Shown: positions 47 to 59,249 of the stretch, piece after piece
Layout of the letters: each line of letters opens with the position of its first letter
Numbering within the stretch: the first letter of the stretch is position 1
Assembly: GCA_965285935.1 (NCBI GenBank)
Contig: OZ260663.1
Span: 99,448,001 to 99,512,000, forward strand
Length of the DNA stretch: 64,000 bases
Direction: 5' to 3'
From: Ophelia neglecta
Taxonomy: Eukaryota
The notes under the pieces: generated by a model
Databases searched by the model: none
Told to the model about the DNA's origin: nothing
The model's input: the letters and a program-made list of their open reading frames with translations, nothing else
Translations under genes and position numbers: made by a program

Positions 47-1582
47 CTGTATAGTTCGTTGTAGCAATAAGGGTATATCCCCTTGACGTGTAATATGTGT
101 TGACATTTTCTACTGGCTCTTTATCAGTCATTTTCCTGTAGACAACCAGATTAAACTGGTACCGTGTCTCAGGCAGTAGTCCTGATACAGTCCCCTGCTG
201 CCACTCTGTTTTAGAGTAACGCACGTCAGCTCCTAGTAACCACCCCTCTGATGACGTTGTATACAGTCTGTAATATACATGGTATCCGATGTAAGGAGCG
301 GCTCTGTCTGAGATGTCTGTACTCTCCTTCCATCTCCACGTGACCGAGTTTGTGGTCAATGATACCGGACTAGTCGGAACCTCGTCAGAATGGCCGAAAT
401 TCATCTGTGCTAGTAAAACCAGAGTAAATCACTTTGAAAAAAGGAAGCATTTTCTTGAATTAATGTATATATTTGCTTCGTTCTGCGCATACGACGAGTT
501 GAGCGCGAAAAAACAACAAATTCCGAGTTAGTTACAATAACGATATATATATAATGATAGTTGACACTCACGTATTATGATATCACACTGGTCCCCTGTC
601 AGCCAATAACCCGTCCCCTGGATATCACCACAGCCATCAGTACACACCCCGCGGTCCCTGACACACAGTCTGGCCTTACACCCAGGGTTACAGACGTCAT
701 GGCATTCAGAGGCATCCCGGCAGGCTGGAAGCACAGAAAATCATGTTGAAGATTACCTTTAATTGATGTGCGTCCGACGGAACACTCATCTAAAGGAGTA
801 ATAATTCACTGATAACATGGGCCACGTGTATAATCACAAAGTGGTCAGTTAAATACTAGGGAATTGTGTGAATACAAGTTTATTTATTTTTTAAAGTTAA
901 TTAAGCTACCTGTTTTTCCGCATAACGTTTGCACGTGCCAAATATAGCTAATAATGTATATGAAACACGTGTGTTATGTATGTATGATGATTTTCGCATT
1001 ATCTTATGTCCACGTATATGTACGTATGTTTATAATTTCCAGAAATTGAACAATTTAATTCCTCAGCCCCCCCCCCCCCCCTTAACACACACACCCATCC
1101 CTTTTCTTCTATGCCTCTTCCCTCTCTCCCTCCTACTTCCCAAACCCCTCTTAATACAAAGACAGTTTCGCCCCCATCCTAGTTGTTTGTTTACGGCCAA
1201 GACGAGGTCCATTACATACCCCTTTTTTTCTTCGAAAAAAGTGGGAAATAAACAGGAACTGGAATAACCGTACCAGAAGGAGGCAGACAAGGAGGAAATA
1301 ATGCTTATAAGTGAATCTCGTTAATATTACGCCCATTGGATAATATTCGCTATGGTTCTCAGTGGGCACAAGCTTTAAAATGGAGGAATTATAGTTGAGC
1401 TCTTGGTCCATTAATGAAAGAGTCGTGACTACTATATTATAATGGTGTACACCACACTATGTTTTTGTTAAAGTTGAAAAGAGCGTCCTACACTGCTCTA
1501 GAGTGATATAAAATAAAGATGTACCTTGTGTGTCCGCCAAGGACAGGAAGAGCATCGATAGACATATTTTCATAGCTCCCAT
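47..1582 (-). CDS. Receptor A, 5' part (signal peptide-EGF-FN3); paralog of Tyr-motif receptor D, continues off the left edge
   Basis: Exons 1525-1582 (MGAMKICLSMLFLSLADTQ, phase-1 GT), 572-724 (EGF-like CRDASECHDVCNPGCKARLCVRDRGVC...C) and 47-409 (FN3 ..VTWRW..YIGYHVYYR..WQQGTVSGLLPETRYQF..). All are GT-AG and in frame. Assignment to the short type is inferred from colinearity with 32593-34850. Confidence 0.85.
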
Positions 1583-2196
1583 TTTTTGTAGGGATTGAAC
1601 CTAAAGGGAGTTCCACTGGTGAAATGCTTCGCTGTTTTCCTTCTTCGTTAACTTTTACCAAAGTATATTAAGGCTGCATTCATTACCTCTGCATGATAAA
1701 AGGTGTCGGTAGAAATGTCAAATATGACTCGGTGCGTTCCCTTTAAACCGGTATTACGCAGTATTAACCTCAATATTCTGCTGCCCAAATAATCTCCGGT
1801 AGAGTGGGGATTCAAAATGTGTACTTCCTTGTTTGTGACATAGATCCAACCAACCGAGAACGCTTCATTCACCAATTTCTATACGTGAATATCGCGCTAG
1901 GGCAAGGGATATGCATTGGCGCTTTGCCTTAAGTCTGGTTAGGACGTTTCAAATGCGGATCCTTACCTTTTAACAATAATTCGTGAAGCAGTGAGGGCGT
2001 AGACAACCTTCACAAAAACTTACCTCTGTTGACGAGGTAAGGAGAATGGGGATAACTGTAAAACCCAGATACGAGACACAGATAATCAGATATGATATAC
2101 AAGTAATTTAAAACGTAGCCGTTTAATGTAGGTTTGTGGTAGGGGTTAGGCTTAAGGATGGAAAGTTTCACTAAGGTTGTTTGCTAAACCCTACCC

Positions 2197-2235
2197 TCCT
2201 CGCACATAGATTATTGGCCTCAGTCCGCCCCTGTC
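2197..2235 (-). promoter_or_regulatory. Conserved GC-box-containing upstream block shared by six first-exon cassettes
   Basis: cctcgc..g(g)cct(c/t)agtCCGCCC at 2225, 20549, 24716, 35500, 53198 and 55819, which is 630-770 bp upstream of each ATG. Confidence 0.45.
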
Positions 2236-5200
2236 TACATAACAAAGGACATCTCAAAGCATTCAAGGTAACCCAGCAAAATTCATATGTACCTTTAGAA
2301 ATGTGTTAAACGTCTGCAATAAATCCCAGTAAACTGTCTCATAGAAAACATCCATTATAGCTCCCGACGGAGTCATTGAACCATGTCTTACAGTGATGTA
2401 TTTACTATTTAAGGGCGCCGAGTGTAAGTTTAAGCAGCCGTACTTGACAATACGGTGTACGGTGTATTAGCAAGAACTCACCGCAGGTAACATCTTTATA
2501 TGAATATTACTAATAGTTTCTAATAATTATTTCATTTGTTTGTACCAATAGAAACATTTAGTACAAACAATGAATGTGCAGTAAAACATCTTTTCTGATC
2601 TTGGCATAGTTAACGCTGTGACAAGAGATATTCAAAATTATCTTCTTGCGTCCTTCATGCCAAAGTCCGATAATACATGTAGTCAATAAACGATGATTTT
2701 CTTTATAGTTAAATGTACTTTTTATAAGATAAATATCTGTATTAACGTATATAGTATCGTATCTTAACGGAGTATCTTATATATTTATTAGAAATCACAT
2801 TGAAAACGATATACAGTGACCGCAGGAAAGCTCTTTCCTGGTACACCGTATATACCAAGGCGTCTGTATATTTAAAGCTTGTGTTGCATTGAAATGCAGA
2901 CGACATTCCTGTTTGAACACGTTATGTATATATGATGACATTGGTTTTTTTCTTGTATCATATAAAGAGCAGGCGAGGGGGGGGGGGGGTTACCATGTAA
3001 CCCAGCAATAAATGGCAATTTGAGTAAGTGTACCGGAAACTAATGATTATCCGACTAACATGCTGTCGTACTTTTTCCAATCATCCATTAGTCTACCTTT
3101 TTCAAATCGTATTACAACCACTGATATATTACTTAGAACCAACACTGACAACGAGTTACAAAGAACGCTGGACATAAAATCGCTGTACAAATCAGGTCAA
3201 CCATACCATAGTGTCATTGCAAGGATCGGGCCACGTCAAGTGTTTGATTGAAAGAGTAATGTAGTTGCTGAATGTGTAGCAGTAACCATATTTGAATTTG
3301 AACCATATTTGAAGTCATTAAATGCACAAAGTCTGTCTTTAAAGGCTATATCCTGTGTTGTCATAGCAACGCATTTACCAGTTACAACTAATTTTGAAAC
3401 TTGATGCAACAAAGAAACTTAACTGGTAACTGGGTGAATCAAGTGGCGGCTGATATTTATCTTTACCGGATGATATAGTGAATGTCATAGAAAGTAGGGT
3501 AATATGCCTATTCTATAACAGCCGTTTCAAATCAGCAATGTTGCTCCATCCTCACTAGTCGGAGCACCGATTTCTAGTTTGCAGGAAACTAAATAAATCT
3601 CCTATCGTTTACATGTTAAATGAACATTATTCGACATCATTTTTCACATATTCAATAACATTTCTGCCCAGTGGCCTACATTTCAGGGGAAAATAAAATT
3701 AACACAGCATATGTACAAAAAAGTTGATAGAGGCCCTGGGAGAAAATGTGGCTACTTTACGTGTTTTTTCACACGAACCCATGAATATCCACTTATCTCT
3801 TTCACAATCCCACATTTCCAAAATAATAACCTTGCCTTAAATTGTTTAGTGTTCATAAGCATAGTATCTATATTTTACTATCAATATATATTCCAGGCAT
3901 TCCACGTACGTTTCTGCCTTATTGGCCTATCACAGGTCGGCTTGGCCAATCTCGACTACTGGTATCTTGGGGAATCTCTTATACGAATTCCACAAGCTTT
4001 GTCCACCGTGCCCAAAGCACACTCATTAGTTACTAGCTTCGCCCACCACGACCGAAGCCTAGTCCGAACACCTTCCTGTCCGGCTACCGTCTAATTTGAT
4101 TAACTGCCGGCTCTGGCTTATAATGCCAGCCACAACTTGGCAGGAATACACCTACTAGCCCTGTGAGAATAGTATGTGAAATGATTCACTCCATGATCAG
4201 CTCTCTTGTAAAGCTCAGGAAACGCCTCTCCGAGTGCTTCATGAACAACGCGTTAAATAACTCACTCCGTGAACAGCTTCCTTAAATACAGCCCACATTA
4301 TCCGCACAGTTCACAAGCTACAAGTGCTCTTAAGCACTCACTGACATAAACATGCCAACTATACTAGCTTCTATAACAGCTACAGTAAACCAGTCAATAA
4401 ACATGGGGTTTACAATCATATTTACTAATACCCAACATTATTAAGCCAAGCACTGTGCTATATGTAACACGCACACGTTTAAATGGAGAATAGGTCTTAT
4501 TATACATTTTAATATTCCTTGAACTGAGGTTTCTTACTTCAGACATGAATAACTAATAAAAAACGGTTTCCTAGCTGTAGAGTTTGCGATGGTATGTTTC
4601 TAAATATATTTGGGCGTACCAGGAGAATAATTGATCATAGCATTGCCTGTGGTCTTTCCAGCACATTAAATGGTACGTTTTTGTATTTCATAGCTTAGTA
4701 ACGATTAAAATCATCAAATCTTCCACGTATAAACACAAATCTACAAACATTTAAACTTTTTAATGGTATTATAATAAAAAGCGTTTATTAATTTTTTATA
4801 TCATAATACAAAATGTTTGGCAAGCAAATTACAAATAGAATATGCTAATATGTCAAGGGCCACCATTATTTTGTTAAATTTCATAATTTTTAATTAACTT
4901 GATCAACTAGACCAACATGCTGATAACTTGTATTTGTACAACGTCCTTATTAGCATTCATTGATATCACTGGCGCTACTTTATGAAATCATGACATCATA
5001 CTTATAAATACATTACTTCTTTTCACATTAATTATATAACACTTAGTAACTGTGCTATCGGAAATTCACAAATCCTCTCTCACAGTGTCACTCGACTTGT
5101 CAATATAGGAAATTAAACGACAAGCCTATATAGTCAAGGCATTTGACATCCATGTCTATGCCTCGAATTATTATATCATATAAGAAGAATTTCTAAATAA

Positions 5201-8200
5201 AGTCACACACAAACTTTATATCATAACAAGTTACATTGTCACATCATATTTAGGATGCACTGATTCCTCGAATAAATCTAACAAAAAAGCAAAACTTATC
5301 TAAACAGACTGTCAACAGACGCATTAAAAGAATGCAAAGGAAAGGGGCATATAGTAGTAGTAGTGGTTTATTTGTATTTCAATAATAATGTACATGACTA
5401 AGTAACTAGACAGCTTTACAGGACGCCATATAACATATTTGTATTTGTCAGTGTAGGTCATCAGATAGGAAGAAATATCAATATGAGTTGTTTATACACA
5501 GCAATATCTGGACAAATTAAACTATATAAAAATAAAACCAAAAAGCTATAGCCATCAGAGCTAGAGCCAGGCAATAATACCATCCGTACATGAATCTATC
5601 CCAGACTTGGTGTAAAACAACATTGACACCGTACTGCAATTTTGGCAGAAACTGTTTCTGCCCTTCGGATTTAAACTATATCCGAAAAAAAACCTTCTTC
5701 GAGATATCACTTTCCACCAAATATTTAAGATTTTTCAAAGCTGGTCCGAGAATACATTCCGGCGGTAGCAGAACCATCAGGATCCCGCAGGTGATCAGTG
5801 CACTTAATCACACAAACTTCTATTTCTCGACGATCCAGTTTTATCGGTGAAATGCAGTCCCGGGCTAAATTCCCTCCGAGCTCCCCATTTACTGATATTT
5901 ACAAAACCATCAGCCAATGAGGGGCTCGGAAGGCATTAAGCCCGGGCAAAATGGCAAACAACGGAAACTGCCAAGAGATTCAGTCATAAATTCAAATAAG
6001 GCGCCAAATCTAAAGACTCAGATTGATAGTTAGAGACTACAAATGGTGGCGAAACATGTCTCGATCACAACAAGCTCCAATCTCTGTGCTGTTACATTTT
6101 TCCATGCGTGTAAATATATACATTGTTAATTTTACTGTTGTTCAAACAGGATGCTTTATAAGTGTTCTGGTGTACTTTGTCCTTTCTGTTGGCTTTGTAA
6201 TTAAATGCGGAAATATAATTATGTGATATATAAGCAAGCTTGTACAATTGACAAGATTTGCAATTTAGGTCGCTACTCTGAGTTGTACGTACTACCATTG
6301 ACATTTCTGGCGTTGAAGAAACCGGATATCTTGAAGCTCATCCTTACTGGAAGTTGGCATATGAGGCATATCTGGACATACAGTGCAATGCCAGATCATG
6401 GAGGTATCTGTACTGAGCCTGTAACGACAAGGGTACGGGACAATACTGTATAGTTGCTAGACCAAGGCCTTCACCAATAAAATACAAAAGTGAAGAGCGG
6501 ATTACAAACACGATAACTACATCGTTGATAAATATATTAATTTTCCTTTAACGGAAAACAATGAAATCGAATAGTAGTTAGCATAAAGTTACAGGATTAA
6601 ATACTCGAAGTCATTTAAAGAAAATAAATCTTGAAACATGGGCTATTATAAAACACATGAAATAAATACATAAATAATTATAATGCTCTGTTCTTTTCGT
6701 ACCAGTGAGTTAACAAACTGGGGTCTTCGGTCGCAGACGTAACGGAGACAAAGGAACACGTCGACCGCTTGGTCGACTTTCATCTTCTCTAAAATACAGT
6801 TGGCAGCACAAAACAGGCCACTCCTCATCGCCCCGTCCCTGGAGGAAAAAGAACATAAGCAAGTCGGTTTGGATTTGTTCAAAATATTTAGATAATCGGA
6901 TGAAGTTTCATATTTTAATAATCATTACAGGATGAGGAAACATCGTAGGCCCTCCCCCGATCCCACCCCTAAATACTTACATGCACTGTACAATGATTGG
7001 TTTGGCATGGTCTCTATCTCTCATCCAACTTTCTATTGTGTCTAAGAGATCCAAGAGAGAGTTCATCCCTGGCAGCTCACTGGTGTCCGGCCAATCCGAT
7101 AACTGGAACTGCCTTACAATCAACGGCTCGCTGTCATCCTGTACGAGGAAATCATATACTCAACGCTTGATACTTATTTTAAGAAGCTATTAAAATGCCC
7201 CCAACTGTATGGAGCAGTATAAATAGTGTCGTAGCGGGTATTTTTTCTTATATCACCAAAGTCGGTTTTACCAAGAACACACAGATGAAAGACATCAATG
7301 TTTATTTCACTATTTGGTCATGTGTATACCTCGTCTGGTTCTGTGACTTGGAACTCTCTAACAAGGATAGGCCCGACTGTCTCTGTTAATATGATCTCCA
7401 CTTGTATTCCGCCGTACATCGGTCTGTGGTACTCGTCGGCGTCTGGCCAGTAACTCGGAAACGACTGAGAAGAGAGAAACGAGTTGTTTGCAGAGATAGG
7501 AAACAGCAAAATTCATGAAGCTAATGGCTCGCAAAATTTCATTCCATATGCACATTACCGTAATTGTAATTGTGGGCATTGGGTCCAGAATGAAGGTTAT
7601 AATTCATGCTAATATTATTGTCTTATGTTTAGCTTACCTCCTTTACATATCAGGGTACGAATCATTATGCGGATTACTAGACGTACTGAATGCATTTATT
7701 ATAAATATAGATATGGATAATCGCCGTTACCGAGTCATTCCCATCTTGTTTGTCCAGAAGTACAATAGTAGAAGCTTTCTGCTGGTAGACCAGGCGCCAG
7801 AAGTCGTTCATTGTATTGGTCAGCGGCATTTGGGTGGCGATCATTGCATTCTCCTTCCGATATGTCTAATCATGTAACAAATAATGCTACAAATTGGATA
7901 ATTAGGTTTATATTTTGTTTTGGGTTGAAGGGGACGGAACCTTATGATAGTGTGTAAACATTAAAGTTCACTAGCATCATTTAAACGCTGTCTACAGATT
8001 TGAAAACCGTCAAACACATTTCCCGGATGATGAGAGTTATATATTTGTCTAGAGGCTTAAAGGAAATACAGTTGTGCTTAAAATCGAACCCTCCATCTTG
8101 CAATGATAGAGTAAATAAAATCCTACATACTTAGTACATAATAGCAAAAAAGTCCGCATTCAACAAATGCGGCATTATATTGCTTTCAAAGTTACAGCCA

Positions 8201-11200
8201 TGAGCCCAAATAATCTCCCACTGGGCATATACTACTTTCTTTAATTACGTTCTTACATCCACGAAAACGGCATTGATGTAAGTTCCCTCTTTTTCCGAAG
8301 TCTTCTTCAGTACAGGAAAGTCATCGTCTCCTGTACGAAGATTAATTAAAGTTAATTAAGGTATACCTTATACATAATGCAAAATTACAGATACGAGAAG
8401 CGGATACACAGATAGAGAGTATAAGGAAATTGGCTTCATGTATAAGGTTTGGTATGTTTCAGTTAAATTCGCATAGCAAAACTATACGCCTAACACCGTT
8501 TCAACCAAAACTAGTTGTATCCGTACAAGTGCATCTCGTATTTCACTCGTGTCTCGTTTCTAGTTTTAAAATATGGCGTAAACCAAGCTAAAGAAAATGC
8601 TTCTTGATTTATTTTTTTCTACAAATATAAAACCATGCAAACTTGTCAGTACATACTAGGAACGATCTCGTCATTTCTGTTCTTGTCGGTGTTTTCATCC
8701 AGAAGGCCAATCAGGTTTTCCCGTTCGATTGTCGCTTTGACGCTGTTCAATTTCTAAAGATAATATTAAACATGTCATTCCTTTAACAATATTGCGCTAT
8801 AAGTACCAGGCACAATTATTGTGACATCCGGATTCCATTTGAAGATGTTGGTGTCTATAGCTAAGATAAAACATTATTAATTCCATATAGCCTTGTTTGT
8901 CCGAAAAGAATTAACATTGACACATGTGTATCCAGAATATACTTTGTAATGCCAGATACCTAGCTACAGGGTTAATTAGTACCTCAAATTGTTCCCCTAG
9001 AGGTGTCGTCTTATTTTCATTAACAGTCCCAAGGGCATTCATTGTCAACTGGAGGTTGCCGCATGGAATGGAGGTGTCTCCGCAGGTCACATGGTCAAGC
9101 AGAGCTTTATAAACGAACTCGTATTGGGCCTGTAATAGCCTATGTTTTAGTGTAAAGCTAAGCATGGCATAATAAGAGAAGTATCAGGCAATGGAAACGG
9201 GGAGAAAGTTGAATATTCCCTAGACGGATCCATTAACCTAAGTACTATTAATGTACTTCTGTATCGTACTAGATTTGGGGCTGCGTATATCTTCTTTTAT
9301 CAGGACCGTTACCTTAGTTTGTACCATCTTGAGCCTCTCCCGCCTCAGGCAGTTGACCAATGAGAAGACGTCCACTTTACACTCCGCCTCGGCTTGTTGT
9401 ATCAGACAATCCAGGGCGATAAATGTCCCAGTTCGTCCTACCCCGGCACTGAAGCGAATAACAGCCAATAAACTAACATCCATTACAATACAGTGTGTAT
9501 GCCACTCTTTATTTCGTTATATCATTTTATTATAATTAAGTTCTCTTCAATAACAACCCTCTTCCCACAACCCAATCGCCACATAAATTTATTAACTATC
9601 CGAGAGAAAATTTACTGTGTTGCATTTCTCTTATCAAATAGTTATTTCCTGTTGTTTCTGTTTACCTGCAGTGCACGATCATTGGGCCCTTACTGACGCT
9701 GTCAAAGGATCTGACCTTCCTTCTGAAGGCAAGCAGAGGGTAAGCCTGCTCCGGAGCCTTCTTGTCGGGCCATTGCAGAAATTGCATATGACGTACAGTC
9801 CTGGATTCTTTCTGTACAATAAACAATGTATGATTAGTTTCGCTTTTACTACTTTGGTTTATTATGAGCATTAAGGGCGGTGTCTTTTGGTGTTTTTCGA
9901 CATTTGATATGGCTTAAAGCAATTAAAGATGAATGTTTCTTATGCATTGACGTTATGGCTGAAAGTACCCATACTTATGTCATGTGATCAGCAGTTTTCC
10001 GGACAAGGTGTTGCGGCTAAAACTCAATAGGTGGCGGAGAAGCAATGCAGCCCATGTAGGCTTTGGGTGATATTTGATTAACCATTGGACACACGAATGC
10101 CAATCAGTCTTAAGTGCAAATAAAGTTGGCTCACATTGCTGCATTACAAGTCATATAGTCCAAGAACCAAAATACACGTACCATTGATAATGGCTCTGAA
10201 TCGAGGTGGAGTGCAGAACGGTTTATCTAGCATATAGTACCCTGGGTATACTCTAATGGTCCATGTGTGGATACTATACCTTATGAACCGTTGGTTAATA
10301 ACACTACCGTGAGAATTTATCGTACATGAGCCAAAGAAAATAAACTGCTGAAAACGGGATCTTCAAGTTAAGTACCACAATTCTGTTCTCACGAAATTGG
10401 CATTAGTACCTACCCTTTTACAGACGTTGAGTATGCAAAGGTTGTAATCCGTGAAGGCATCACGGCTGACTGTGGTGATCCTGTAGTTACCATACTGTTC
10501 CTGGCCCCCAACCGTCTCAGGCCAGTATCTCTCACACTTCCTCTGGTAACGAGGGAATAAGTAAGTTAAATAACTTCACTGTTAAATATATATGTATTTA
10601 TACCAGGTTTGAACAATCAAACCCGTTGAATTCTGCTTTGGTCAGATAAAAAATAATGAACATAATTTAGATATAGCATTGGCTTGCTTAAACATTGTTT
10701 TGATAAACTTCATAATTATAAGCTACATAGACAATGACAAACTTTGTAAAGATAATATGGTGACCTCTTTAATTTTCAGATATCTCATACAGGTATTTAG
10801 ATTTCCACAACAAATAAATATCAACTAGTCATATACCTTTTTATTTTCTACAAACTTGGTGAGCATTACAATTCTATTAGCTTTGGATTGCCAAATCATT
10901 CTCCACATATCACGAGTAGTTTGAGGCCTTGGTCCTGAAAAAAGAAAAGAGTGGCGACCCTGTAATCTATGTTAATTAAAGAACTTTTTAATGTAAAAGT
11001 TTGGGTATTTTTGTATATTTAGTAGAGTAAGTCTTTGATGAACGCACCTTGTGAAGCAATGTAAGCTTTCTCCGTCCAGTTGTATCCCTGCGGATTGAAA
11101 TATTTAATGGCATGGAAATGGATGGAGATACGAATATGAGTTGACAGTTGACGTCAATGGAATTGTATAATTTCGACACAATCTATCTGGCGATTAATAA

Positions 11201-12485: not shown

Positions 12486-12517
<32 letters not shown>

Positions 12518-13233
12518 TGCAGTTATCAGTGAATTCAGAGATGTCTGTTGACCAATGTTTAAAAGTGTAGCTGTTTAATCTAAGCCTCGGGCATATGCAC
12601 ATCAACATAAACATGGCTTTTCTAATGTTTACTGATTTGGATTTTTTTTTAAAGCAACACCTCATTTTTAAAATACCTATTTGTTCCGTAGGAATAATCG
12701 GCAGTAATTCTCCGCCATGCTCGGCATTATTTTGTTCCTTGCCTCCACCATGTACTTGGCACCTAGTGCACATATGACACGATTTCTTTCTACGTCTGTA
12801 AAAAATCCAAAATGTGATAACTGTATATTCTAAATCACAAGCTAGTTGCATTCAAAGCTTATCAGAACTCATCTATTGCTGGTGGACCAATCATATGTCA
12901 GCAAATTAAGCTTCATTTTGCGGTACAAGACGGTTAAACTCCCAAACCATTATAGCATGTATTGGCTTATGCTAATATGTACTCTAACACCTCCAATATT
13001 CAAGCAGCGTTTAACAGTTCCTATATCCGTGACCGATAGCTAACTGGAGGGAAACTAACAGTCCGTCCGATCGTAGGTTGTCTCCAAGAAGTCGGCGCGC
13101 TTAGTCTAACAGGAGCACTTGAATATCGGCGGAACTTACTTGTATTTCCCTGGCATTGTTTGGTTGGTTGCTAGCTTCGGATGATTTCGGGTTACCACTC
13201 CCGTTATGTTTCCAAACGCAGTTATAGTATAAT

Positions 13234-13329
13234 ATGAGGCTTTATGACCCCATAGACCATTTTTGTATAAAGTTTTGACATGCCACTTAATACTATTCTT
13301 CATTGGTCTAGTAGGTCATAAAGACTCAT
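13234..13329. mobile_element. Short inverted-repeat (MITE-like) remnant, also at ~46342-46437
   Basis: atgaggctttatgaccccatagacca ... tggtctagtaggtcataaagactcat form imperfect ~26-bp inverted repeats. Confidence 0.45.
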
Positions 13330-45500: not shown

Positions 45501-48500
45501 CCCTGTGAAATCAGGCAATCAGAATAAATCAAAACACTTGAAATGCATCGAATTTTACAACATCGCCAGTCATCCTTTATATTGTTGAGCTTATATGGGT
45601 CTAAGTCAAAACAAAATTTAAATTGCAGTTATCAGTGAATTCAGAGCTTTCTGTTGACCAATGTTTAAAAGTGTGGCTGTTTAATCTAAGCATCGTGCAT
45701 ATGCACATCAACATAAACATGGCTTTTTTAATGTTTAATGATTTGGTAACTATTTTTTTTAAGTAACACCTCATTTTCAAAATACCTATTTGTTCACTAG
45801 GAATAATCGAGAGTAATTCTCCTCCTTGCTCGGCATCATTTTGTTCCTTGCCTCCACCATGTTCTCGGCACCTGGTGCACATATGACACGATTTCTTCCT
45901 ACGTCTGTAAAAATTCCAAAATGTGATAAATGTATATTCTAAAACACAAGCTAGTTGCATTAAAAGCTTATCGAACTCATCTATTGCTGGTCGACCAATC
46001 ATGAGTCAGAAAACTGTGCGTCAGTTTGCGATACAAGACGGCTAAACTCCCAAACCATTATAGCATGTATTGGCTTATGCTAATATGTACTCTATCACCT
46101 CCAATATTCTAGCAGCGTCTAACAGTTCCTAAAGCCTAGACCGATAGCTTACTGGAGGGAAACTTAAAGTCCGTCCGATCGTAGTTTGTCTCCAAGAAGT
46201 CGGCGCGCTTAGCCTAACAGGAGCCCCTGTATTCCAGCGGAACATACTTGTATTTCCCTGGCATTGTTTGGTTGGTTGCCAGCTTCGGATGATTTCGGGT
46301 TACCATTCCCGTTTTGTTTCCAAAAGCAGTTATAGTATAATATGAGGCTTTATGACCACATAGACCCTTTTTGTATAAAGTTTTGACATGTCACTTAATA
46401 CTATTCTTCATGGGTCTAGTAGGCCATAAAGACTCAATACCATTTTGTTATTGTTTAATTATAACACACCTAGACGGCCTATGTGGGCTGTTTGCGGTCA
46501 CATAGCTGTTACTTTAAACACTACTTAACTCACTAGACGGCGCGGAAATCTTTCCGGCTACCATATCTCTCTCATTTAAGCTTTTTATTCATTTATGAAA
46601 ATCAATGATTTCGAAAAGATTTTCCAAATTATTGGGGACAACTAAAAGAATCGAAAATTATTACTAACGTGACGATTTAGCGCGAGAGTAGTTCATAATC
46701 TCCAGAAATCCAACGTAATGTTAAGTCAATTGGGCTAGCGATATATTCTGTGTCGTGATTTTAGGACTGTGATTTATGAACGTTGGGCTCTGTCATGCTT
46801 GTAATTATACGATCATTTGTCATTTGTAGAAAAATTTACGCTGAGCCAAAGTGCATATAATAGAGGCTCTTTGCGCAAGCGCAAACCGCTTAGAAGATCT
46901 ATGAGTGGTATGAGAAATTATCTATATGTGAGCCTAACTATACTCTGTTCCACTGAAGCGCGATCATTGCAAGCAGTTCCATTTTTTCAAATGGTTGCAG
47001 ACGTCCACTCCGTTAGGGGAAAGAGTCATGAGATCATAATCAGAATGTGATCTTTGGATCCGGTGTGTTCTAGAGGCAATAACACTTCGGATTTATATTT
47101 TACTGTCAAATAGACTGCATTTAAAATCTGTAAGGATTCGTCATGCAGTAAATATAGCAAAAGACAGTCAATAATCTCCTATTATTGCCTAAATATATCA
47201 CATTGTTACCTCAGAACAACAAATATCAGGACGCCAACAGCTAGTGCGATCAGGAATACACAGGCAACGACAATTCCAGCTATATGTCCAGACTCAAGCT
47301 CGATGACAGGTTGTGGGTCGTTGGTGGTCACTGGCGTCGAAGTACTAGCTGTGACATCTTTGAACCATGTCGTCCTTTTAGTCGTTATTTCTGGGATAGG
47401 CGCATTAGTCGTACTCGGATTATGGGACGGAGTTGGCTTTACGGACGTTGTTGGCGTTGAAATAGACATTTTAGTTGAAGGACCTGCAGAAGAAGGAACA
47501 ACAGAACGTGAACCGTAATTCACAATTGCATGCACAAATGAGTATGATTGTACTGGCTGAACGCCTGCTTTCTTCTGTTTCTATAAAACTTAGCAAATGA
47601 TCTAACCAATTGTTTTAGCCAGTGATTACTTTCAAGTGATCCTTGGGTGATCGGTTCAGTGCACATATTACATGCAACAAGATATGTGTGCACAGAACCG
47701 ATCACCCAGGGACTACCTGAAAATAATCACTGGCCGAATCAATGAGTTACATCATTTTTACGCATCTAAACACATATATCGATATATCCTAGGAGAAATA
47801 CTAGGATCCAGCGTTCAGTGCTGGCCTGATGATTTCGGCCCGATTTCATGGACTTTTCTTGAATTGTGATTTGGTCTTGCTTGCTGGGTATCCAGTTCTC
47901 CCTCATTACCACATAGAATAATGTCTACTATCTGGTGGTCATTACCAGTAATTGTCAACGCTGATGTGCTTTTAAATGTTGTCTGTTCAGACGTCATTTC
48001 CCTTGATGTGGACCCTCCTGGTGTGATAGTCTTAGAAGGGCTTGGTGCAGGCGTCGTTTTACCAAAATCTAAAAAGTAGACCAAAGAAATAACGAAAGCG
48101 TCATAAAGCTTTACCAATTTATTAAGTTGGACGAGCAAATTTTGCACCCAGATACTGCTTGTACAATATTCAAAAATGGTGCGTATCATTCCAAGGAAGA
48201 ATGTTAATTTAGTTGGTTTAAACATAGAAAATCGAAATGCTTCACCTGGTAATGTACTGGCGTTCAGATACGACTTAGTGAATGTAAAGTAGGTTTCTGG
48301 ACTTTCTTTTTTCTCCCCTGACTCGTTAATCCTGTAAGCTTTCAAATCAAACTTGTACCGTGTCCCCGGCTGTAGTCCTGATACAGTTCCCTGCTGCCAC
48401 TCTGTGTTACTATAAGGCACGTCAGCTCCGACCGTCCACTCCCCTGATGACGTGGTATACAGTCTGTAGTATATACGGTATCCGATGTAAGGAGCGGCGC

Positions 48501-51500
48501 CGTCTGAGATTTCCGTCAGACCTTCTTTCCATCTCCAGGTGACCGAGTCTATACTCACAGATACAGGGCTCGTATCAGCTTTATCAGATCCGCCAAAGCG
48601 CATTATGGCTGGAAATGTATGCATGCGTATAAATATATAAATGGCATAATTGGTATAAGCAATGAGCTACTTCCAATACGACAAGTGTGTGGTAAAGAAC
48701 AAATTTAGAAGTATATTAATGAATCATACTAAACTTCGCTATAGAGATTATAGGAAGGTGTATTTCATGATCTGCAGCGTATATGCTACCATATCTAATA
48801 CTTGCAATCGTATTTAACCCGACGACCGTACATATCGTTTAAGCATAGTAAAACGATGGTACATGACTATGTATGGTATGGCCTAGAGGTGGGAAGGGTG
48901 ATACATCGGTCCTCATGGGGCCCATCACGAAAAGATACATGAACAAGATTCACGTATAGTAGCGTTTCTTTCCTTAAGACGATTTGCACAGTTCAGTTCA
49001 TTTATTAATCGCCGCCACATCCATAAAGCCGGCACAAATCTCTATTGAATGAGACGTATTGTTATAGCAGAAATTAGAAACCGTAGCAGAGGTTTCCGTA
49101 AGAAGCATAAGAATAGTAAACGTTTCTCTTATTGCCGTCATATTTGACGCGTTTGCCCACCATTCCATTCGTTCGTAATGCGATAAACTAATCATTAAAG
49201 CTATGTGGTGTGCCTTAATAAACTGCAGTGAGATTTGCAATACTGTTACCGAGAGGCCTGCGTCAGGGAGAGGAGGCCTTGTTTAGGAATTAGGGACGGG
49301 TTAGGAACTTGGGTTTGAAGGAGAGATGAAAGGGGCGTAAAAATGGAAACTAGGCTCCCTATATCCTTTAAAAACACATACTCGGTTCATATGATCAGCC
49401 AAATATATGTTTGCCAAATTTTTCGAACACTTTATGGCAGTTGGAGCTTACTCGCTATTTATTCAGCAGTCTTGGTGACATGGTCTCCATCATACCGGGC
49501 ACTATTTACTGAATAACGGCGCTGGTTACTTACGTATTACAATGTCACACTGGTCGCCAACCAGCCATGCATTGTTCACATTGAAGTCACAGTCAGCACA
49601 TGCTCCACTTCCCCGGTAACATACATCCTTACACAGAGAGTTACACTGCTCAGTACAGGCCAGACCGGAAAGACCAACGGGACATTCTGATAAACATATA
49701 TAAGCGTTTCTTTATACATGATGAACAATTCGGAAATTAGAGAGCAACAAAATTGAAGTGTGTGAAATATAATCACAAATATATCCTACTTATTATTTTT
49801 TCCGTTGTAGCTTCCAGAAAGTCTTCACTCGTTCTGCCATATGTGTTGGTACTTTCAACTGCTTCTTGGTCAGACATTTGTCTGTAGCCAGCAAGATAAA
49901 ACTGGTACCTTGTCCCCGGCTGTAACCCTGATACAGTTCCCTGCTGCCAGTCTGCTGTGTTGGAGTAAGGTATGTCAGCTCCTACCGTCCACCCACCGGA
50001 TGATGTTGTATCGGATGACGTTGTATACAGTCTGTAGTAAATACGGTATCCGATGTAAGTAGCGGCGCGGCCTGAGATCCCCGTTGTACCCTCCTGCCAT
50101 CTCCAGGTTACAGAGTACGCGGTAACTGAAACCGGAGTAGTCTGTACCAGGTCAGAAGAGCCGAAGTTCATTTGTGCTGTTGAATTATAAAAATAACAAT
50201 GAGGGACACCAGTGTCGACAAGAATACTGGTTGTTTGTCATTATATACTGAAGCCCGAAAGATTGTATAAAAACAACAAAGCGCGAGAACGAAATGCTTG
50301 TATATGCATAGGACATACTCACGTATTCGGATGTCACATTGGTCTCCCGCCAGCCAGTCGCCGTTGACATCGTAATCACATCCTTCAGTACATGCTCCCG
50401 TCGTCCTCGCACACAACGAGCTTTTACACTTCCAGTTACATCTAGCCTTGCAATCGGTCCCGTGGTAACCGGTCGGGCAGTCTGGATAAAAATATCGATT
50501 CCTACTTCAAAAGATAATTTAAAATTGTTTCATAGTTCTTTTCTTAACTTAATCATTTGTCAAATCACAAAAGCAATTAACATTCTATTCTCTTACACTC
50601 GCTGTTTCACAGTTAACTGGCCATGTTTAACATTAAATTGTAAGTTCTCATGTTTATGTAATTATGCTTGTTATTTTTTAAACCTTGACTACACGCCTAG
50701 ATTACTGTCCACAGTTCCAGTCGTAGAACTGGTTGGTTGAGTTATGAATTAATTAATTTTATTCTATTCCAGTTTCACCAGACGGTCTAACGATTGGAAG
50801 GATAGTTCAAATGAAATGGCGAAGTCTTTAATTTATATATTATTGAGAATTCCTTGTGGTGACGAAAGACAAAACACCAAGCTTATTGATTTATAGTGCA
50901 AATATGTAGACTTTGAGTTTATTTTTATATGTTTGATGACAGTGTGTGATGAGCTATCCTTGTAAACGTTAATTGGTATTTTGTATATATATATATATAT
51001 TTGGTCTATTGTATGTTTTTTTCTTTCTCCATTCATCTATATACCTATTCTGTGCCATCAGAACTTTTAAATACAATACTTTAAATGCCAATATACATAT
51101 CAAGTAGGACAGCTATACGGCACTGATCGTGTGCGGCCTGATACCAGACTCAATGGGACAACTAACAACGCCGACTTATTGACATTTCACGCTTGTTGCA
51201 CACAACATCGGCATGAAGCGTCTGGCTACTGTAAGTCACATTGATAAAGCCTGCATTAATATCCACCTCTATGTTTAGGCATTTCGCGTATCCTATATTA
51301 CAGGTATATATTATATACACAACAAATATTTGTTAGAAGTTATGGTCATCGGACAATTCCGGGGTTTGGGCTTCGTCCACGACATTGTAAAATTGTATTT
51401 CGTCGACTATAAACACTAAAACAGAATGGCGGCGAGATTCGTTGTTTTACACTCAGCCATGCAATGCCTATTGCGCCGTACCGTACCAGTGCAATAGCCT

Positions 51501-52429
51501 TGATCAGGGAGAGAGCACCCATACAAAGACTTTTCTCGTTCCAGTCGCGACTTGATTTACTAATGGTCCCTACTATCAAATCATCAACTTATTACAAATC
51601 ATGCTACGATGTTTGCTTGTTTTCTTTATAGAATTATTCCACATGGTGTCCGATTTGTCCAATGGTCTCTCTTTGTTTAATTAACACACTTCTTCACGTA
51701 TGTTGGCAGCTCGTCCGCTATCTTAAGAGAAAGCATTGCCCTAAATCATGAATTAACCATGGCTAAATGGTACTTTAAATATTTAACACTATTTATGAGT
51801 TCGCATATAGGCCAAAGAAGTTATTTTACTAGAAGTCCATCCATAGGCCTTCTACAAGCAGGCCAGCACAGAGTTCCTAGTGGCCGACTTTGGAACCCTC
51901 AGCGCCGCCGTTATGACATCCATCAGCGCCTCCAAACGCCTGAAAAAGTGCTAACTTGGATACTGAGAATTATAAGTGCTGGTTTCTAGACAACCGGGTT
52001 CGTGAATGGCTGGTGTAAACGCACGTGGTCTAGCGTCAGATACGGACAGAGCCTGAACAGCCGATACCACTACGCTACTAATTAAGGAGTCGCGAATATT
52101 ACAATATTGTTGACCGCTCAACCAATCAGTTTATATGGTAACGCTCTTATATCTACAGGCTACAGACAAAAAGAAGGAACTGCTTTATCTTCCAGGCTGG
52201 AAGAATGTAGCACACGCATCACATAGGAATTATAGCATATAGCTTTTCCCGCTAATAAAGGAGTCGATATTATTACTATAATGCTGTACGTCACTAGAAC
52301 AGCTAGTGCTGGCGACAGGGGAAAACGGCGCGTCCTACATTGCCAGAGAGTAATTTAAGATATGTATTTACCTTGTGTGTCCGCCAAAGCCAGGAAAAGC
52401 ATCGATAGACATATCTTTATAACTCTCAT
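39515..52429 (-). CDS. PTP-E: receptor-type protein tyrosine phosphatase, SP-EGF-FN3-EGF-FN3-mucin stalk-TM-PTP D1-PTP D2, 1199 aa, apparently intact
   Basis: 24 GT-AG exons summing to 3600 nt: 52372-52429, 50323-50481, 49790-50176, 49534-49686, 48246-48608, 47946-48068, 47210-47483, 45786-45904, 45210-45502, 44715-44802, 44436-44512, 44167-44206, 43957-44054, 43534-43662, 42788-42933, 42441-42576, 42073-42219, 41774-41870, 41402-41475, 40947-41081, 40522-40656, 40165-40322, 39878-40013, 39515-39589. Motifs include KNRF, DYINAS, YIASQGP, KCERYWP, WPD, VHCSAGVGRTG and MVQTKAQY; D2 has VQCMDGAMRSG. Confidence 0.92.
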
Positions 52430-53668
52430 GTTACCTAGGTATTAAACCTAAACGTAGCTCTCCTGCCGAAATGTTTTGCTGTTTTCCTAGTTTGTAAGCC
52501 TTTATAAAAGCGTATTAAAGCTGCATTCTTCACCTGGGCATGGGAAAATGTCGGTAGAACCGAAATTATGGCTTTGTGTTTCCATGTAAATATGTTGTAC
52601 GCAGGTTTTAAAGCCACTGATACTCTGCAGACCAGATAAACTGTGTAAGAGTGGATATCCCAATTTTACTTTCTCGTTCGTGACGTAGATCCAACTAATC
52701 GAGAACCCTTCATACACCATATCTCTGTAAGTGTATACTGCTCTGGAGTCGATTACACGCCTGGGCGATTTGCCTTTAATGTGATTAAGAAATCTCAAGG
52801 ACGGATCCTTGAATCTTGAGACGGCTCAAGGTCTCACACAGAGAGTAGGCACCCTTCCTATAAGCGTGCCTCCTTCGATGAACTTAGTAGGATCGGTCAT
52901 ATTTCAAGGGGTTGGGCATACATTAAAACCTGACATTTGTTGGAGATAAAACACACGGCTACGAGATACGAGTAATTAATAACTTAGCTTTATGGATGAG
53001 GTTTGGAGTAGGAGTAAGGATCTAGGACAGGACTTTTTTTTTTACTAAAGAAGTTAGTTTAACCCTACCTGTAACCCTGTCATAACCCGTACTTAACTTA
53101 TGGGTATCGTATATGTGTATCTTGCATTTCTCTCGCATCTCGTATCAGGATTTATTATCTACCGTATCCTCCTCGCACGAGGACTATCGACCTCAGTCCG
53201 CCCCTGTCAACACGATACAGGTAATCTAACAGCATTCAAGGCCACCCAGTTATGTTTACATATGGCAATAATAATCTTTGGAAATGTGTTGTATGTCTGC
53301 AATACAGCCAAGGACAACTTACTCATAATAATAGGTCCCGACTGTAGTCAATAAACCATGTCCTCCAGCGCTGTATTTACAGTTTGAGATCGCCGAGTGT
53401 TAGTTTAAACAGTTGACAATACGCCTCTTACAAGTTCTACCGTGTATCAACAAGGACTCACCGCAAGTGATATCTCTACACGAGGAATATTTCTGGATTG
53501 TCTAACGTTTATATCGTCACCCTATGTACAAGTAACATATATCTATACGGTATTAGTATAGGCAATCAAGCCTACATATCAGCATTCATGTACCGTGTAA
53601 CAGCCAGCACTCACCCAGAGTAATAAATCCTCGCGAAGCAAATCGTAATATTTTAAGCATTATTTCTG

Positions 53669-54526
53669 ATATTTGCCTCCTGCGAGCTATTCTATAATAA
53701 ACCCAATACAATCTCATTCAGGCAACAACGATAAACCGTTCAACTGCACATTGTTGGCCTCAAGTGCTGAAATATAGAACAAAAACCTTATAAGTGCTGC
53801 AAATGGCTGCTAAACATACCAAGGGTAACTGTTTCATAACGGCTATATTAAAACGGAAATTGTCGCAGTACCGATTCCCTTTCTTATGCTACGGACTTTT
53901 TTTTGGTATTAGCAGTTTTGCTCCCCCTGCCGGCAATCTTCAATTCACCGATCAAATAATACAACTTGCATGCATCAAACTCTCGGGGGATGGTTAGTGG
54001 CTATTATGTCTGTGACGTCACACCATTGTTTGAGCAGTTTATTTGTACGTTTGAATATACCACTATAGTAGCATGAATAAATTCTTGCTTAAAACATAAT
54101 ATTTGCCTCCTGCGAGCTATTCTATAATAAACCCAATACAATCTCATTCAGGCAACAACGATAAACCGTTCAACTGCACATTGTTGGTCTCAAGTGCTGA
54201 AATATAGAACAAAAACCTTATAAGTGCTGCAAATGGCTGCTAAACATACCAAGGGTAACTGTTTCATAACGGCTATATTAAGCGGAAATTGTCGCAGTAC
54301 CGATTCCCTTTCTTATGCTACGGACTTTTTTTTGGTATTAGCAGTTTTGCTCCCCCTGTCGGCAATCTTCAATTCACCGATCAAATAATACAACTTGCAT
54401 GCATCAAACTCTCGGGGGATGGTTAGTGGCTATTATGTCTGTGACGTCACACCATTGTTTGAGCAGTTTATTTGTACGTTTGAATATACCACTATAGTAG
54501 CATGAATAAATTCTTGCCTAAAACAT
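53669..54526. repeat. Near-perfect ~430-bp tandem duplication
   Basis: atatttgcctcctgcgagctattctataataaacc starts at 53669 and again at 54099. The two units differ by only a few bases. Confidence 0.9.
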
Positions 54527-55001: not shown

Positions 55002-55059
55002 CTTGTGAGGACGCCAAGGCCAGGAACAACATGGATAGACATATCTTCATAACCCACAT
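55002..55059 (-). CDS. Second signal-peptide first exon upstream of PTP-E
   Basis: MWVMKICLSMLFLALASSQ-G|GTAAAT, 58 nt, phase 1. Flanks are homologous to those of 52372-52429 and 19732-19789. Confidence 0.7.
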
Positions 55060-58000
55060 GTTACCTAGGTATTAAACCTAAAAGTAGTTCTCCTGGTGAA
55101 ATGTTTTGTTGTTTTCCTAGTATGTAAGCCTTCATCAAAGCGTACTAAAGCTGCATTCTTCACCTGAGTATAGGAACATGTTGGAAGAACTGATAATAAG
55201 GCGTGGTGTTTTCCTTTTAAATGGGTATTACTCAGGTAATAAAGCCACTGATACTCTGCTGACCAGATACACTGCGTAAGAGTGGATATCCTAATTTTAC
55301 TTCATCGTTCGTGACGTCGATCCAACCAATCGAGAACCCTTCATACACCAAATCTCTGTAAGTGTATACTGCGCTGGAGCAGACGACACGCCTGGGCGGT
55401 TTGCTTTAATATGACAAAGAAATCTCAAGGACGGAACCTTAAATCTTGAGACGGCTTAAGGTCTCAGACAGGGAGTAGGTACCCATCCTTTTGTAAGCTA
55501 AGGAGGATGGGACATATGTCAAGCGGGACATATGTCAAGCGAATTGAGGCTTAAAACCTGACATTTGGAGATTAAAGACACAGCTACGAGATACAAGTAA
55601 TTTAAAACTTAGCTATATTGTTAAGGTTTGGAGTAGGAGTTGGAATCAAGAATGTTTTTTTTTTCCTATGGAGTTACCATAACTGTACCACTAACACTGG
55701 CTTAAGCCATACTGAACTTATGGTTTTCGTATGTGAGTATCTCATACTTCTCTCGCATCTTCTATCAGGGTTTACAATCGGATAGTATCCTCCTCGCTAG
55801 AGGGCTATCGGCCTTAGTCCGCCCCGTCTGCACCATACAGGTGATCTAACAGCATTCAAGGCAACCCAGTTATGTTTACATGCGGTAATATCAATCTTTG
55901 GATATGTGTTAAATTCCTGTCAAAAAGCCTGGGACTCACAGAAAACCTTCTTTTTAGGCCCCGACGAATGTCAATAAGCCATGTCTTTCAGCTGGATTTA
56001 CAGTTTGAGATCGCCGAGTGTTAGTTTAAACAGTTGACAATACGCCTCTTATCCGTTCTACGGTGTATCAGCAAGAACTCACCCCAAGTAATATCTCTAC
56101 GCGAAAAATATTTCTAGATTTTCTAATTTTTAAATCATCGCTGTATGTACATCTACCATATATATCTATACGGTATTAGTATAGGCAATCAGGCTTGCAT
56201 ATCAGCCTTAATGTTGGGTAAAACCGCCCGCACATGCCCAAAGCAATATCTCCACGCGAAGCAAATCGTAATATTTAAAGCATTATTTCTGATTTTTGGC
56301 TCCTACAATTTATTTTATAATAAACCCAATACAATCTCATTCAGCCAACAATGATAAATCGTTCAACTGCACATTGCTGGTCTCATGTGCTGAACTAGAA
56401 CAAAACCCTTATAGATGCTGCAAATGGCTGCTAAACATACCAAGGGTAACTCCTTCATAGCGGACCACAATCGGGATTGTCCTACAGTATTCAAATAATC
56501 CAGTCTTTAAGTACTATTAACGGGCGTCAAGTGTGAGCTAAAGTCACTATCAGTTTTTTTTATCTATGTGTCTGTGTGAATTCCAAGCAAGCAATATATG
56601 CACGCGAGATATGTTTCTAGATATTAAATCAATAGATGATATTACAGTATTATCTCAACAGATATATTTATATATTTGAACATTGACTGTTCATTACAAT
56701 ATAATTAATAACGTATCTGACTTAAACATAGTAAACGCAGGGTTTTTTATATTTGTATTTTTTATAAGAAGCCGTGCTGTATTAACTTTTATGTTATCGA
56801 ATCGTAATGAAGCCTCTTCTATACTAAATTAAGAAAATAACACTGAAAACGAGATACAGGGATCACAGGAAATCTACCGCCTAGTACCCCGTATAAACCA
56901 AGGCGTCAGCTTTTGGTGAAATAAAATGCAGACGACATTCCTGTTTACACACGTTATGTATACAGTGTGGTTTTCCTTGATTCATATAAACATAAAGGGA
57001 AGGCAGGCCCGCGTTTGGGTGGGGTGGGGTGGGGTATAAACCAGGGGTGCGAATTGTGTTCGACGATCTCGTTAGGCCAACCCAACATCTGATTATTAGA
57101 AAAGATATTTTGTGTCATAGCGCAACTTTCCTAAACTATAATATTGATGTTCTTTATCGTCATTCCCAGGATACATGATAAATATACAAACATATTTAGT
57201 TTTTGTTTTTAGAAAAGAGAGTGGAACCTAAGGCAGCTATATCTATCTTATATTGGCCTTTGTAATTAGGCACTACAGATGTATATCACTATAAGAAACA
57301 TGTAATTAAGTACTATAGATGTATTATTTTACGAATCATGTCTAGAGTTTATGATTAACCCTCTATAATATGGACGAATAATGGCAAGGTTGGAACCGGC
57401 TATTTTCGATCAACCAATAGAATGCCTTGCTTAAAATCGTGTCAAAACCGCTGATATATTAAATAGAAACAAGAATGACAACAAATGACAAAAAATATTG
57501 GTTGAATTACGTAATCGGACGGGCCGGAACTTTCAGTTCCAGTGGGTTCGGGACCAACACGCCCTGATTACTTATTTATTAAATATAATCAGGCGATTAG
57601 GTGCAGAATGAAAAGCAGATGGTGTATTACTGTTGAATTGTTATCCATGGTGCTATACATGTAATTATATGTAATTTGTAGCAAAAGAGGACACTGAAGC
57701 TTGAAGTTTACGGCAAAAACATCGGTACCTTAAAGAACTCAGAAAATCAAGAGTGTACTAAGCGAAAGCTAGAAATACCCAGGCAAATGTGTTCAAAAGT
57801 TACCGAACCGAAAGTCAAAGCTCCCTAATTCTTTGGTGAACCTTCCCTAGATATATTCTCTAATGTACTCGACAGGACATATATCACATTCGCTCCCTCC
57901 CCCCCTCCCCCTACGAAGAAGTCTCAAAAAAAAACTACCGGAACAGACATCTCGAGCAGTCCTGTATATCCTAGGAACCGTCAGTTTAATTGGACATTTA

Positions 58001-59191
58001 CGAAACAGCGGTAAAGACACGTTTATGTCACGAACGTTATCGTCCAAAACTATGTCTATGCGTTGGTGAGGCATGGGGCGGATTCACAGCCCGAGTGGCA
58101 GAACGGAAATTGTCGCAGTACCGATTCGCTTTCTTATGATACGAAGTCCTTTTTTGGTATTAGCAGTTTTGCTACCCTTGTCGGCAATCTTCAATTCACC
58201 GATCAAGTAATACAACTTGGGCCCACTGGAGGCAAGCCTTATGGAGAAACGCACCATCTTCAGTTCACTAGTGCATGCATTGAACTCTCGGGAGCATGAC
58301 GGTTAGGGCCTATTATTTATGTAACGTCACACCATTGTTTGAGCAGTTCATTTTTATGTATGAATGTACCACGATAGGAGCTTGAATAAATTCGTGCCTA
58401 ACACATCCCACTGACCCTATCCCGCCTCAGTAAATCTAAATGCCCTAATCAAATGTAGCTTATCAATTATCTTATACAGAATGTGTGATACTTCCACGTT
58501 TGACAGTGACAAGAAACACACCCCATCCATAGTGCGTGGGCCACTTGCGCTATTAATTTGATTCGAAACGTTTCTTCCGTGAGCCTATATACATTAAGTG
58601 TACTAATTAAGTTCAATCAATGTAAGATTAACAAGCCCTAATCAATTTTTTCTAGACATACACAAGGTCTTGAGCACACATTTTTGGTAACGTACCTATG
58701 AACCAGCCAGAAAATATGATCATCATTCGCGCTTTCCACATTACACGAGGACAGTAATGGGTAATAAGTAGATCTGGATTCTAGGCACCCGGGTTCGTGA
58801 ATGACTGGATCCGGTGTAAATGCCGAAGTCTTCTAGTGTCAGTTATGGACAGAGCTTAAGGTCTCTCTCCGAAAAGCCGATAATACTATGCTACTAATAA
58901 GGGGTGCGAGTATTAAATATTGTTGAACTTGGCTCGGCCAATCAGTTTATATACTATCGCTCTCATACCCACAGGCTACACATAGACAATTAGATAGTTC
59001 TGATTTATCTTTCCGGCTGGCCTAATGTAGCACACGCAGCACATATGAATTATAGCTAATAGTTTTTCCCGCTAATAAAGGGGTCGATATTATTACTATA
59101 ATGCTGTACGTCACTAGATCACCAAGTGCTGGCTACAGATGAAAACGGCGCGTCCTACATTACCAGAGAGTAATTTAAGATAAAGATTTAC

Positions 59192-59249
59192 CTTGTGTGT
59201 CCGCCAAGGCTAGGAAAAGCATCGATAGACATATCTTTATAGCCCCCAT
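59192..59249 (-). CDS. Third signal-peptide first exon upstream of PTP-E (upstream region cut by the Gypsy element)
   Basis: MGAIKICLSMLFLALADTQ-G|GTAAAT, 58 nt, phase 1. Homology to the other cassettes stops abruptly at ~59358. Confidence 0.65.

Follow-up and report, generated by a model that had tools for sequence, protein, structure and literature searches.

The analysed window comprises 64,000 nucleotides of the genome of Ophelia neglecta (assembly GCA_965285935.1, contig OZ260663.1, hereafter C5, positions 99448001-99512000) and carries genes of a receptor family in which related ectodomains are combined with either tandem protein tyrosine phosphatase (PTP) domains or a short tail with tyrosine motifs. 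Exons were called by six-frame inspection and with Pfam profiles, 20 kb of flanking sequence on each side was included (negative coordinates denote positions left of the window start), and searches were run exon by exon. All receptor exons of the window were located on the minus strand by six-frame inspection and Pfam, which agrees with an earlier interpretation of the DNA letters (the sequence-only reading) that had placed all genes on one strand. The exons on this strand that match the Pfam profile Y_phosphatase include, for example, 9665-9913 and 9241-9516, and also an exon of the second PTP domain (D2) at 6980-7159. A plus-strand reading of the window was rejected, the sole coding signal there being a retroelement. 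The gene order in 5' to 3' direction along the minus strand is PTP-E, D, PTP-B, and PTP-A. Three of the genes are of the PTP type, namely E, B, and A, the last with its 5' part in the window, and D is the only one of the tail type (Table 1). The two-tail receptor family to which these genes belong is real, and extends far beyond the window.

All genes of the family begin with the same 5' module, in which a common upstream region and a signal exon of 58 nt are followed by alternating EGF-like exons with eight cysteines and FN3 exons, and the products are predicted to be single-pass receptors. The coding first exon (ATG...CAAG|GT) occurs in seven copies, each preceded by approximately 330 nt of alignable sequence, which bears out the shared upstream sequences and signal exons reported in the sequence-only reading. 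Its translation follows the pattern M-x-x-[MI]-KICLSMLFL[AS]LA.... Genes A and D have one copy each, two copies lie upstream of B, and three lie upstream of E, the outermost of which (59249-59192) has its upstream region severed by the retroelement. Ahead of PTP-E, a unit that comprises the upstream region, the signal exon, and the first part of intron 1 is triplicated (51979-59356, 81-88% nucleotide identity), and a similar upstream/signal unit is found twice ahead of PTP-B, at 19.7 kb and, in diverged form, at 24.1 kb. These repeated first-exon units may be alternative first exons or remnants of deleted genes. The repeated upstream region of PTP-E also contains a 429-bp unit in two tandem copies of 98% identity (53669-54526).

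Phase 1-1 and conserved AG/GT sites are common to all EGF-like exons (150-159 nt) and FN3 exons (360-387 nt). This symmetry of the ectodomain exons allows their gain, loss, or exchange with the reading frame intact, and skipping of a broken exon would likewise preserve the frame. An EGF-FN3-EGF-FN3 order with identical phases had been proposed for all genes; the phases were indeed identical, but the full exon set is not intact in PTP-B, where FN3a is broken off at 17438 and EGF2 is missing, nor in D, where FN3a is frameshifted. The eight cysteines of the EGF-like exon are invariant or nearly so across 30 exons. No Pfam match was obtained for this exon even at E<=10, its AlphaFold model had a mean predicted local distance difference test score (pLDDT) of 48, and its language-model neighbours were mollusc EGF_laminin/EGF_PEAR1L clusters (score 0.92, 181-183 shared features). 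The earlier naming as EGF is thus backed by the cysteine pattern, but not by a Pfam match, and we use the term EGF-like for a label that rests on this pattern and on the language-model look-alikes. The FN3 exons were assigned by PF00041 (cut-off 25), which scored 27.3 and 27.7 bits for FN3b of B and FN3a of A, and 22.9-23.4 bits, slightly under the cut-off, for the FN3 exons of D.

By the WPD/HCX5R signature and the presence of a second PTP domain, A, B, and E are classified as classical receptor PTPs (RPTPs) with tandem domains. Exons of the first PTP domain (D1) reached 44.1 and 50.4 bits, and a D2 exon reached 24.8 bits, against PF00102 (cut-off 20.9). The QWPD and VHC|SAGVGRTG motifs are retained in D1 of all three genes, and their D2 blocks are conserved up to the terminal YANFQ and stop codon; the description of tandem PTP genes ending in this motif was confirmed for B and E at the stops listed in Table 1. 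Compared with solved structures, one D1 exon had PTPRS and LAR as its top matches. Gene A, of which only the 5' part lies in the window, had been taken for a tail-type gene. However, it continues in the left flank into PTP-type transmembrane (TM), juxtamembrane, D1, and D2 exons located 2.2-9 kb left of the window and ends with YANFQ and a stop near -8980, and no D-type TM exon or tail exon was found in the 20 kb downstream of A. Gene A is therefore an RPTP, and its assignment to the tail type had to be abandoned; a continuation of A into PTP exons had been named in the sequence-only reading as an outcome that would refute its model. No frame break was detected in PTP-E and A within the exon blocks compared. 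PTP-B has, besides its ectodomain damage, a 1-nt deletion near 12120 in the juxtamembrane exon relative to A and E, and is probably a pseudogene.

Gene D has the same kind of ectodomain exons, followed by a stalk/TM exon and two tail exons of compatible phases. As the sequence-only reading had stated, the tail contains five Y-E motifs (YEDI, YESP, YENT, YEAL, and YEDV), here within 88 amino acids. Polyadenylation-type signals (AATAAA/ATTAAA) are found 118 and 157 nt beyond the stop codon. The intron between EGF2 and FN3b of D contains a perfect minisatellite of 5.2 copies of an 18-bp unit (32132-32225).

Table 1. Receptor genes and first-exon copies in the window and its left flank. Positions are window coordinates.
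Feature	Position	Strand	Exons and remarks
Gene A, 5' part	47..1582	-	Signal 1582-1525, EGF-like 724-572, FN3a 409-47; continues left of the window
Gene A in left flank			EGF2 -59..-211, FN3b -432..-794, TM -2243..-2395, then juxtamembrane, D1, D2
PTP-B	6344..19789	-	Signal 19789-19732, EGF1 17977-17819, FN3a cut at 17438, FN3b 15865-15503
PTP-B, continued		-	Stalk within 15071-15391 (open stretch, ends approximate), TM within 13580-13921, juxtamembrane within 12032-12397
PTP-B, PTP domains		-	D1 exons ~11700-8914, D2 exons ~8300-6344, stop after YANFQ at 6344
Extra diverged signal exon and upstream region	24037..24094	-	Between D and PTP-B; first ATG now TTG
Gene D, ectodomain	25988..34850	-	Signal 34850-34793, EGF1 33244-33095, FN3a 32935-32593, EGF2 32494-32342, FN3b 32061-31699
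Gene D, 3' exons		-	Stalk/TM 28152-27948 (ends in phase 2), tail exon 1 26844-26675, tail exon 2 26082-25988 (including stop)
PTP-E	39515..52429	-	Signal 52429-52372, EGF1 50481-50323, FN3a 50176-49790, EGF2 49686-49534, FN3b 48608-48246
PTP-E, continued		-	Stalk ~47926-48087, TM within 47209-47580, juxtamembrane within 45156-45518
PTP-E, PTP domains		-	D1 exons ~44531-42004, D2 exons ~41081-39515, stop after YANFQ at 39515
Two further upstream-region and signal-exon copies ahead of PTP-E	55002..59249	-	55059-55002, 59249-59192
All signal exons (58 nt)		-	1582-1525, 19789-19732, 24094-24037, 34850-34793, 52429-52372, 55059-55002, 59249-59192

The two classes have exchanged their ectodomains, and PTP-A is a mosaic of a tail-type-like 5' module and a PTP-type 3' part. 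From 2100 to -920, which covers 540 nt 5' of the ATG to just beyond FN3b with introns included, it has 82-89% nucleotide identity to D, L021, L019, and L025, which are of the tail type, and from -2924 to -8998 it has 75-81% identity to PTP-B and PTP-E. On the protein level within the window, the ectodomain of D is 84-88% identical to that of A and 48-66% identical to that of E, and the two intact ectodomain exons of PTP-B group with those of E (79-81%). The tail-type gene L021 shares 96, 82, 96, and 95% of its amino acids with PTP-A over the four ectodomain exons, and six tail-type genes have 78-92% identity to exons of PTP-B or PTP-E. A genome search with the EGF1-FN3a segment of A (alpha module) recovered about 12 genes of the PTP type and 10 of the tail type, each classed by the nearest downstream cytoplasmic exon as inferred from the coordinates, and the identities of the two classes were interleaved (from the top, 100, 92, and 89% for PTP-type genes; 93, 91, and 88% for tail-type genes). 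With the corresponding segment of E (beta module), about 8 genes of the PTP type and 7-8 of the tail type were found; here the best two matches were tail-type (92 and 91%), followed by the best PTP-type match (90%). These identity ranks and coordinates were used in place of a class-labelled tree. The concept of one ectodomain family with two cytoplasmic ends thus holds on the family level, where both types are clustered and each of the two ectodomain subtypes is combined with either tail, but not as a local paired module. As a separate observation, the first 1200 window bases of PTP-A (FN3a-EGF1 and flanks) have a copy 1.38 Mb away at C5:100825574-100826782 (L002), which shows 100% identity over 741 nt and 98% identity over 1200 nt and has a PTP catalytic exon 6 kb downstream; this copy stems either from a very recent duplication event or from duplicated assembly sequence.

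In the genome, tail exon 1 was found in 27 copies, all on C5, of which 21 lie at 99.47-100.97 Mb (two of them representing one split gene) and six at 103.6-104.6 Mb. The D1 catalytic exon of the subfamily was found in 24 copies at 99.23-101.07 Mb among the 150 scored of 398 candidate exons. The resulting cluster at 99.2-101.1 Mb (1.8 Mb) contains approximately 24 PTP-type and 20 tail-type genes. It is embedded in a much larger expansion of PTP catalytic exons on C5 (~96-107 Mb), C7, and C16, from which the 398 candidates were drawn; all 150 scored exons had E < 1e-10, and most of them belong to long C5 arrays (97-98.8 Mb and 103.6-104.6 Mb). No tyrosine-kinase match that would point to a third, kinase-tailed class was found inside the cluster among the 128 scored of 922 candidates. 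In coordinate order, the 44 genes form 21 runs, compared to 22.8 +/- 3.25 expected by chance and 41 under strict alternation. The two types are thus randomly mixed, neither alternating nor segregated, and an alternating pair is not repeated across the cluster. Segmental duplication is evident in the window, where -906..21167 pairs with 31567..53818 at 80-90% nucleotide identity. The 22-kb duplicated block comprises an ectodomain cassette and a PTP gene and not the PTP-plus-tail pair that had been thought to duplicate as one unit.

Among the 20 tail-type loci that were fetched, 18 contained one to four EGF-FN3 pairs and all 20 contained both tail exons, mostly together with a D-type TM exon and otherwise with a second TM subtype; no PTP exon was found between the ectodomain and tail exons in any of these 20 loci. 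The second stalk/TM exon was not matched by the TM query of D in tblastn, yet shares its terminal ...LG|GT junction with the D-type exon. It is of a kind (...VIGGVTAAGVVFLAVVSGLLVCLG) that characterizes a tail-type subfamily with three EGF-FN3 pairs (L009, L015, L018, L019, L023, and L025). In at least 11 of the 20 loci all recognised exons are open and AG/GT sites are present, and in each of the remaining loci a single exon is broken or partial, or the last motif of the tail contains a stop. Across about 22 aligned tail loci, the tyrosines were almost always kept (QYEDI, VYExP, QY|EN, QYE[AS]L, and EYEDV), the exceptions being a premature stop in the last motif in two copies, one of which also has a Y>F replacement, and one copy that is split. 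The C-terminal pair YE[AS]L-x10-YEDV is present in nearly all aligned copies. The ratio of nonsynonymous to synonymous substitution rates (omega; Nei-Gojobori, 19 paralogues, in which all five tyrosines are retained) had a median of 0.37 and was <1 in all 166 of 166 pairs. Purifying selection thus acts on the tyrosine tail.

We consider it probable that the window covers part of a 1.8-Mb receptor cluster evolving by birth and death, in which a common 5' module has been placed on two unrelated 3' cassettes with a presumed paired function. The first cassette has one exon each for the TM and juxtamembrane parts, followed by a tandem LAR-like PTP with WPD and VHCSAGVGRTG in D1. The second consists of a stalk/TM exon and two exons encoding the 88-amino-acid tail with YEDI, VYExP, YEN, and the YE[AS]L-x10-YEDV pair, which resembles an ITAM (immunoreceptor tyrosine-based activation motif). 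The family was built through exchange of cassettes among symmetric exons. Opposed signalling by the two classes is plausible from their domain and motif content. From the same features we infer that both classes may form a paired system on common ligands, in which a ligand would co-engage both types and the phosphatase would act as eraser. Kinases of the Src or Syk type would phosphorylate the tail and SH2 proteins would then dock, with YE-D-I/V predicted as Src-SH2 type, YxN as Grb2 type, and YxxP as Crk/Nck type sites, and the C-terminal YxxL-x10-YxxV pair as an ITAM-like docking site. The PTP type would carry a phosphatase to the same site and either erase the signal or tune the kinases, as CD45 does. 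ITAM-Syk signalling has been demonstrated experimentally in oyster hemocytes (PMC6994640), so that such machinery is plausible in molluscs. The more specific idea of a paired-receptor recognition system, whose counter-acting arm is a twin with a tandem PTP on the same ectodomain and whose arms are kept matched by exchange among the approximately 44 genes, is possible but tentative.

Several observations weigh against this interpretation. Damage affects B and also D, the only tail-type gene of the window: FN3a of D is 343 nt long, has a 20-nt deletion near 32850, and is shifted into stop codons. Unless their broken exons are skipped, B and D are probably decaying. Unitigs over 27700-33400 from three DNA-like runs of one sample neither confirmed nor contradicted the 20-nt deletion, and apparent joints in these unitigs were rejected as splice evidence because they stem from paralogous FN3 repeats. 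The joining of FN3b to TM and tail exons and the co-expression of the two classes are putative, and the classes in the module searches were assigned from coordinates. The tail pair departs from the ITAM consensus (D/E)xxYxx(L/I)-x6-12-Yxx(L/I) (PMC6994640), as it has V at +3 of the second half-site and no D/E at -3; the first half-site and, broadly, the spacing fit, although the spacing of 10 is itself counted as unfavourable. Furthermore, the ectodomain exons have omega values of 0.3-0.8 with no clear diversifying selection, and a phmmer search of 1.84 billion representative proteins with tail exon 1 gave no hit.

Among the alternatives, the one that retains appreciable weight, albeit unlikely, is that both classes are functional but independent of each other and share ectodomains only through exon shuffling in a fast-evolving cluster. 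The tail type might then be an adhesion or engulfment receptor similar to Draper/MEGF10/PEAR1, and the PTP type might be an adhesion phosphatase resembling LAR, in line with the resemblance of the EGF-like exon to mollusc laminin/PEAR1-type EGF clusters and with an ectodomain under moderate purifying and not diversifying selection. However, the conservation of the twin upstream regions (82-89%) suggests shared regulation, and the occurrence of both ectodomain subtypes in both classes, in near-equal numbers and with interleaved identities, also speaks against independence.

It is improbable that the tail-type genes are debris, that is, RPTP copies that have lost their phosphatase half, lie by chance upstream of unrelated TM and tail exons, and yield no protein. 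The frameshift in FN3a of D would fit such an origin, as would the broken or partial exons or tail stops in L013, L014, L015, L017, L024, L025 (where an FN3 exon is partial), and L026 and the missing homologues of the tail, for which Atlas look-alikes were uninformative as well. But the TM/tail cassette recurs with compatible phases in about 20 genes of the cluster, its five tyrosines are conserved at an omega of about 0.36-0.37, no fewer than 11 loci are open throughout, and both TM-exon subtypes end at the common ...LG|GT junction, features that would not be retained in unconstrained debris. A strictly alternating module of RPTP and tyrosine-tail receptor, duplicated as a unit and co-engaged by one ligand, is most improbable and, as to the alternation, refuted, since the alternation of four genes along the minus strand from the right flank (a tail gene, PTP-E, D, and PTP-B) and the homologous upstream regions and signal exons throughout are outweighed by the next gene A being an RPTP, by the run count, by the content of the duplicated block, and by an ectodomain of D that is just 48-66% identical to its neighbours B and E.

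The favoured reading, a birth-and-death cluster with one 5' module on two cassettes, can be compared with several known systems. KIR, LILR/PIR, SIRP, Siglec-5/14, and CEACAM1/3 are likewise clustered, fast-duplicating genes in which related ectodomains on alternative cytoplasmic parts are interleaved. These vertebrate paired receptors, however, have immunoglobulin or lectin ectodomains instead of EGF-like and FN3 domains, recruit SHP-1/2 through an immunoreceptor tyrosine-based inhibitory motif where a tandem PTP is built in here, and use a charged TM residue to recruit an ITAM adaptor where the Ophelia genes have tyrosine motifs of their own; opposed function is putative in the genes described here. 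Draper/MEGF10/PEAR1 (Jedi) resemble the tail type as single-pass receptors with laminin/PEAR1-type EGF domains and a short tail with ITAM-like and phosphotyrosine docking motifs, but the genes described here have neither an EMI domain nor NPxY, and their EGF-like domains alternate with FN3. The PTP type is comparable to LAR/PTPRS/PTPRF, and functionally to CD45 and CD148, in its signal peptide, FN3 domains, single TM, catalytically competent D1 with WPD and VHCSAGVGRTG, and D2, and differs by the alternation of eight-cysteine EGF-like and FN3 domains and by a very large lineage-specific expansion. We know of no vertebrate RPTP subtype with an ectodomain of this kind. Among invertebrates, Hydractinia Alr (PMC9546547) and Botryllus fester/uncle fester (PMC12582321) are also clustered lineage-specific families, with similar ectodomains linked to tails that differ in their tyrosine motifs. 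Their ectodomains are of the immunoglobulin superfamily or short consensus repeat type, and no phosphatase-domain member is named in the records found (PMC9546547; PMC12582321). No description of twins of an RPTP and a tyrosine-tail receptor was found in the literature searched, consistent with the earlier remark that no such pair with an RPTP member was known, and the two-tail architecture is apparently undescribed there.

The retroelement at the right edge of the window occupies the plus strand at 59400-64000 and beyond, with coding signal from approximately 59.7 kb to the window end. It contains an open reading frame (ORF) of 772 amino acids with an aspartyl-protease match (59704-62019) and a reverse transcriptase fragment (61991-62587), and has a G + C content of approximately 50% compared to approximately 39% in its surroundings. 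No ORF of at least 150 amino acids was found in the 10 kb to the right of it.

Even without a paired function, the cluster is a clean case in which symmetric exons of phase 1, together with segmental duplication, allow an ectodomain to be re-wired to unrelated signalling cassettes. If the two classes do share ligands, this would represent an independent invention of the paired-receptor logic with another set of domains and a more direct inhibitory arm, the phosphatase being located on the receptor itself, would help to explain some of the very large expansion of RPTPs in the genome, and would make the family a tractable one for studying the balance of phosphotyrosine signalling in invertebrate recognition.

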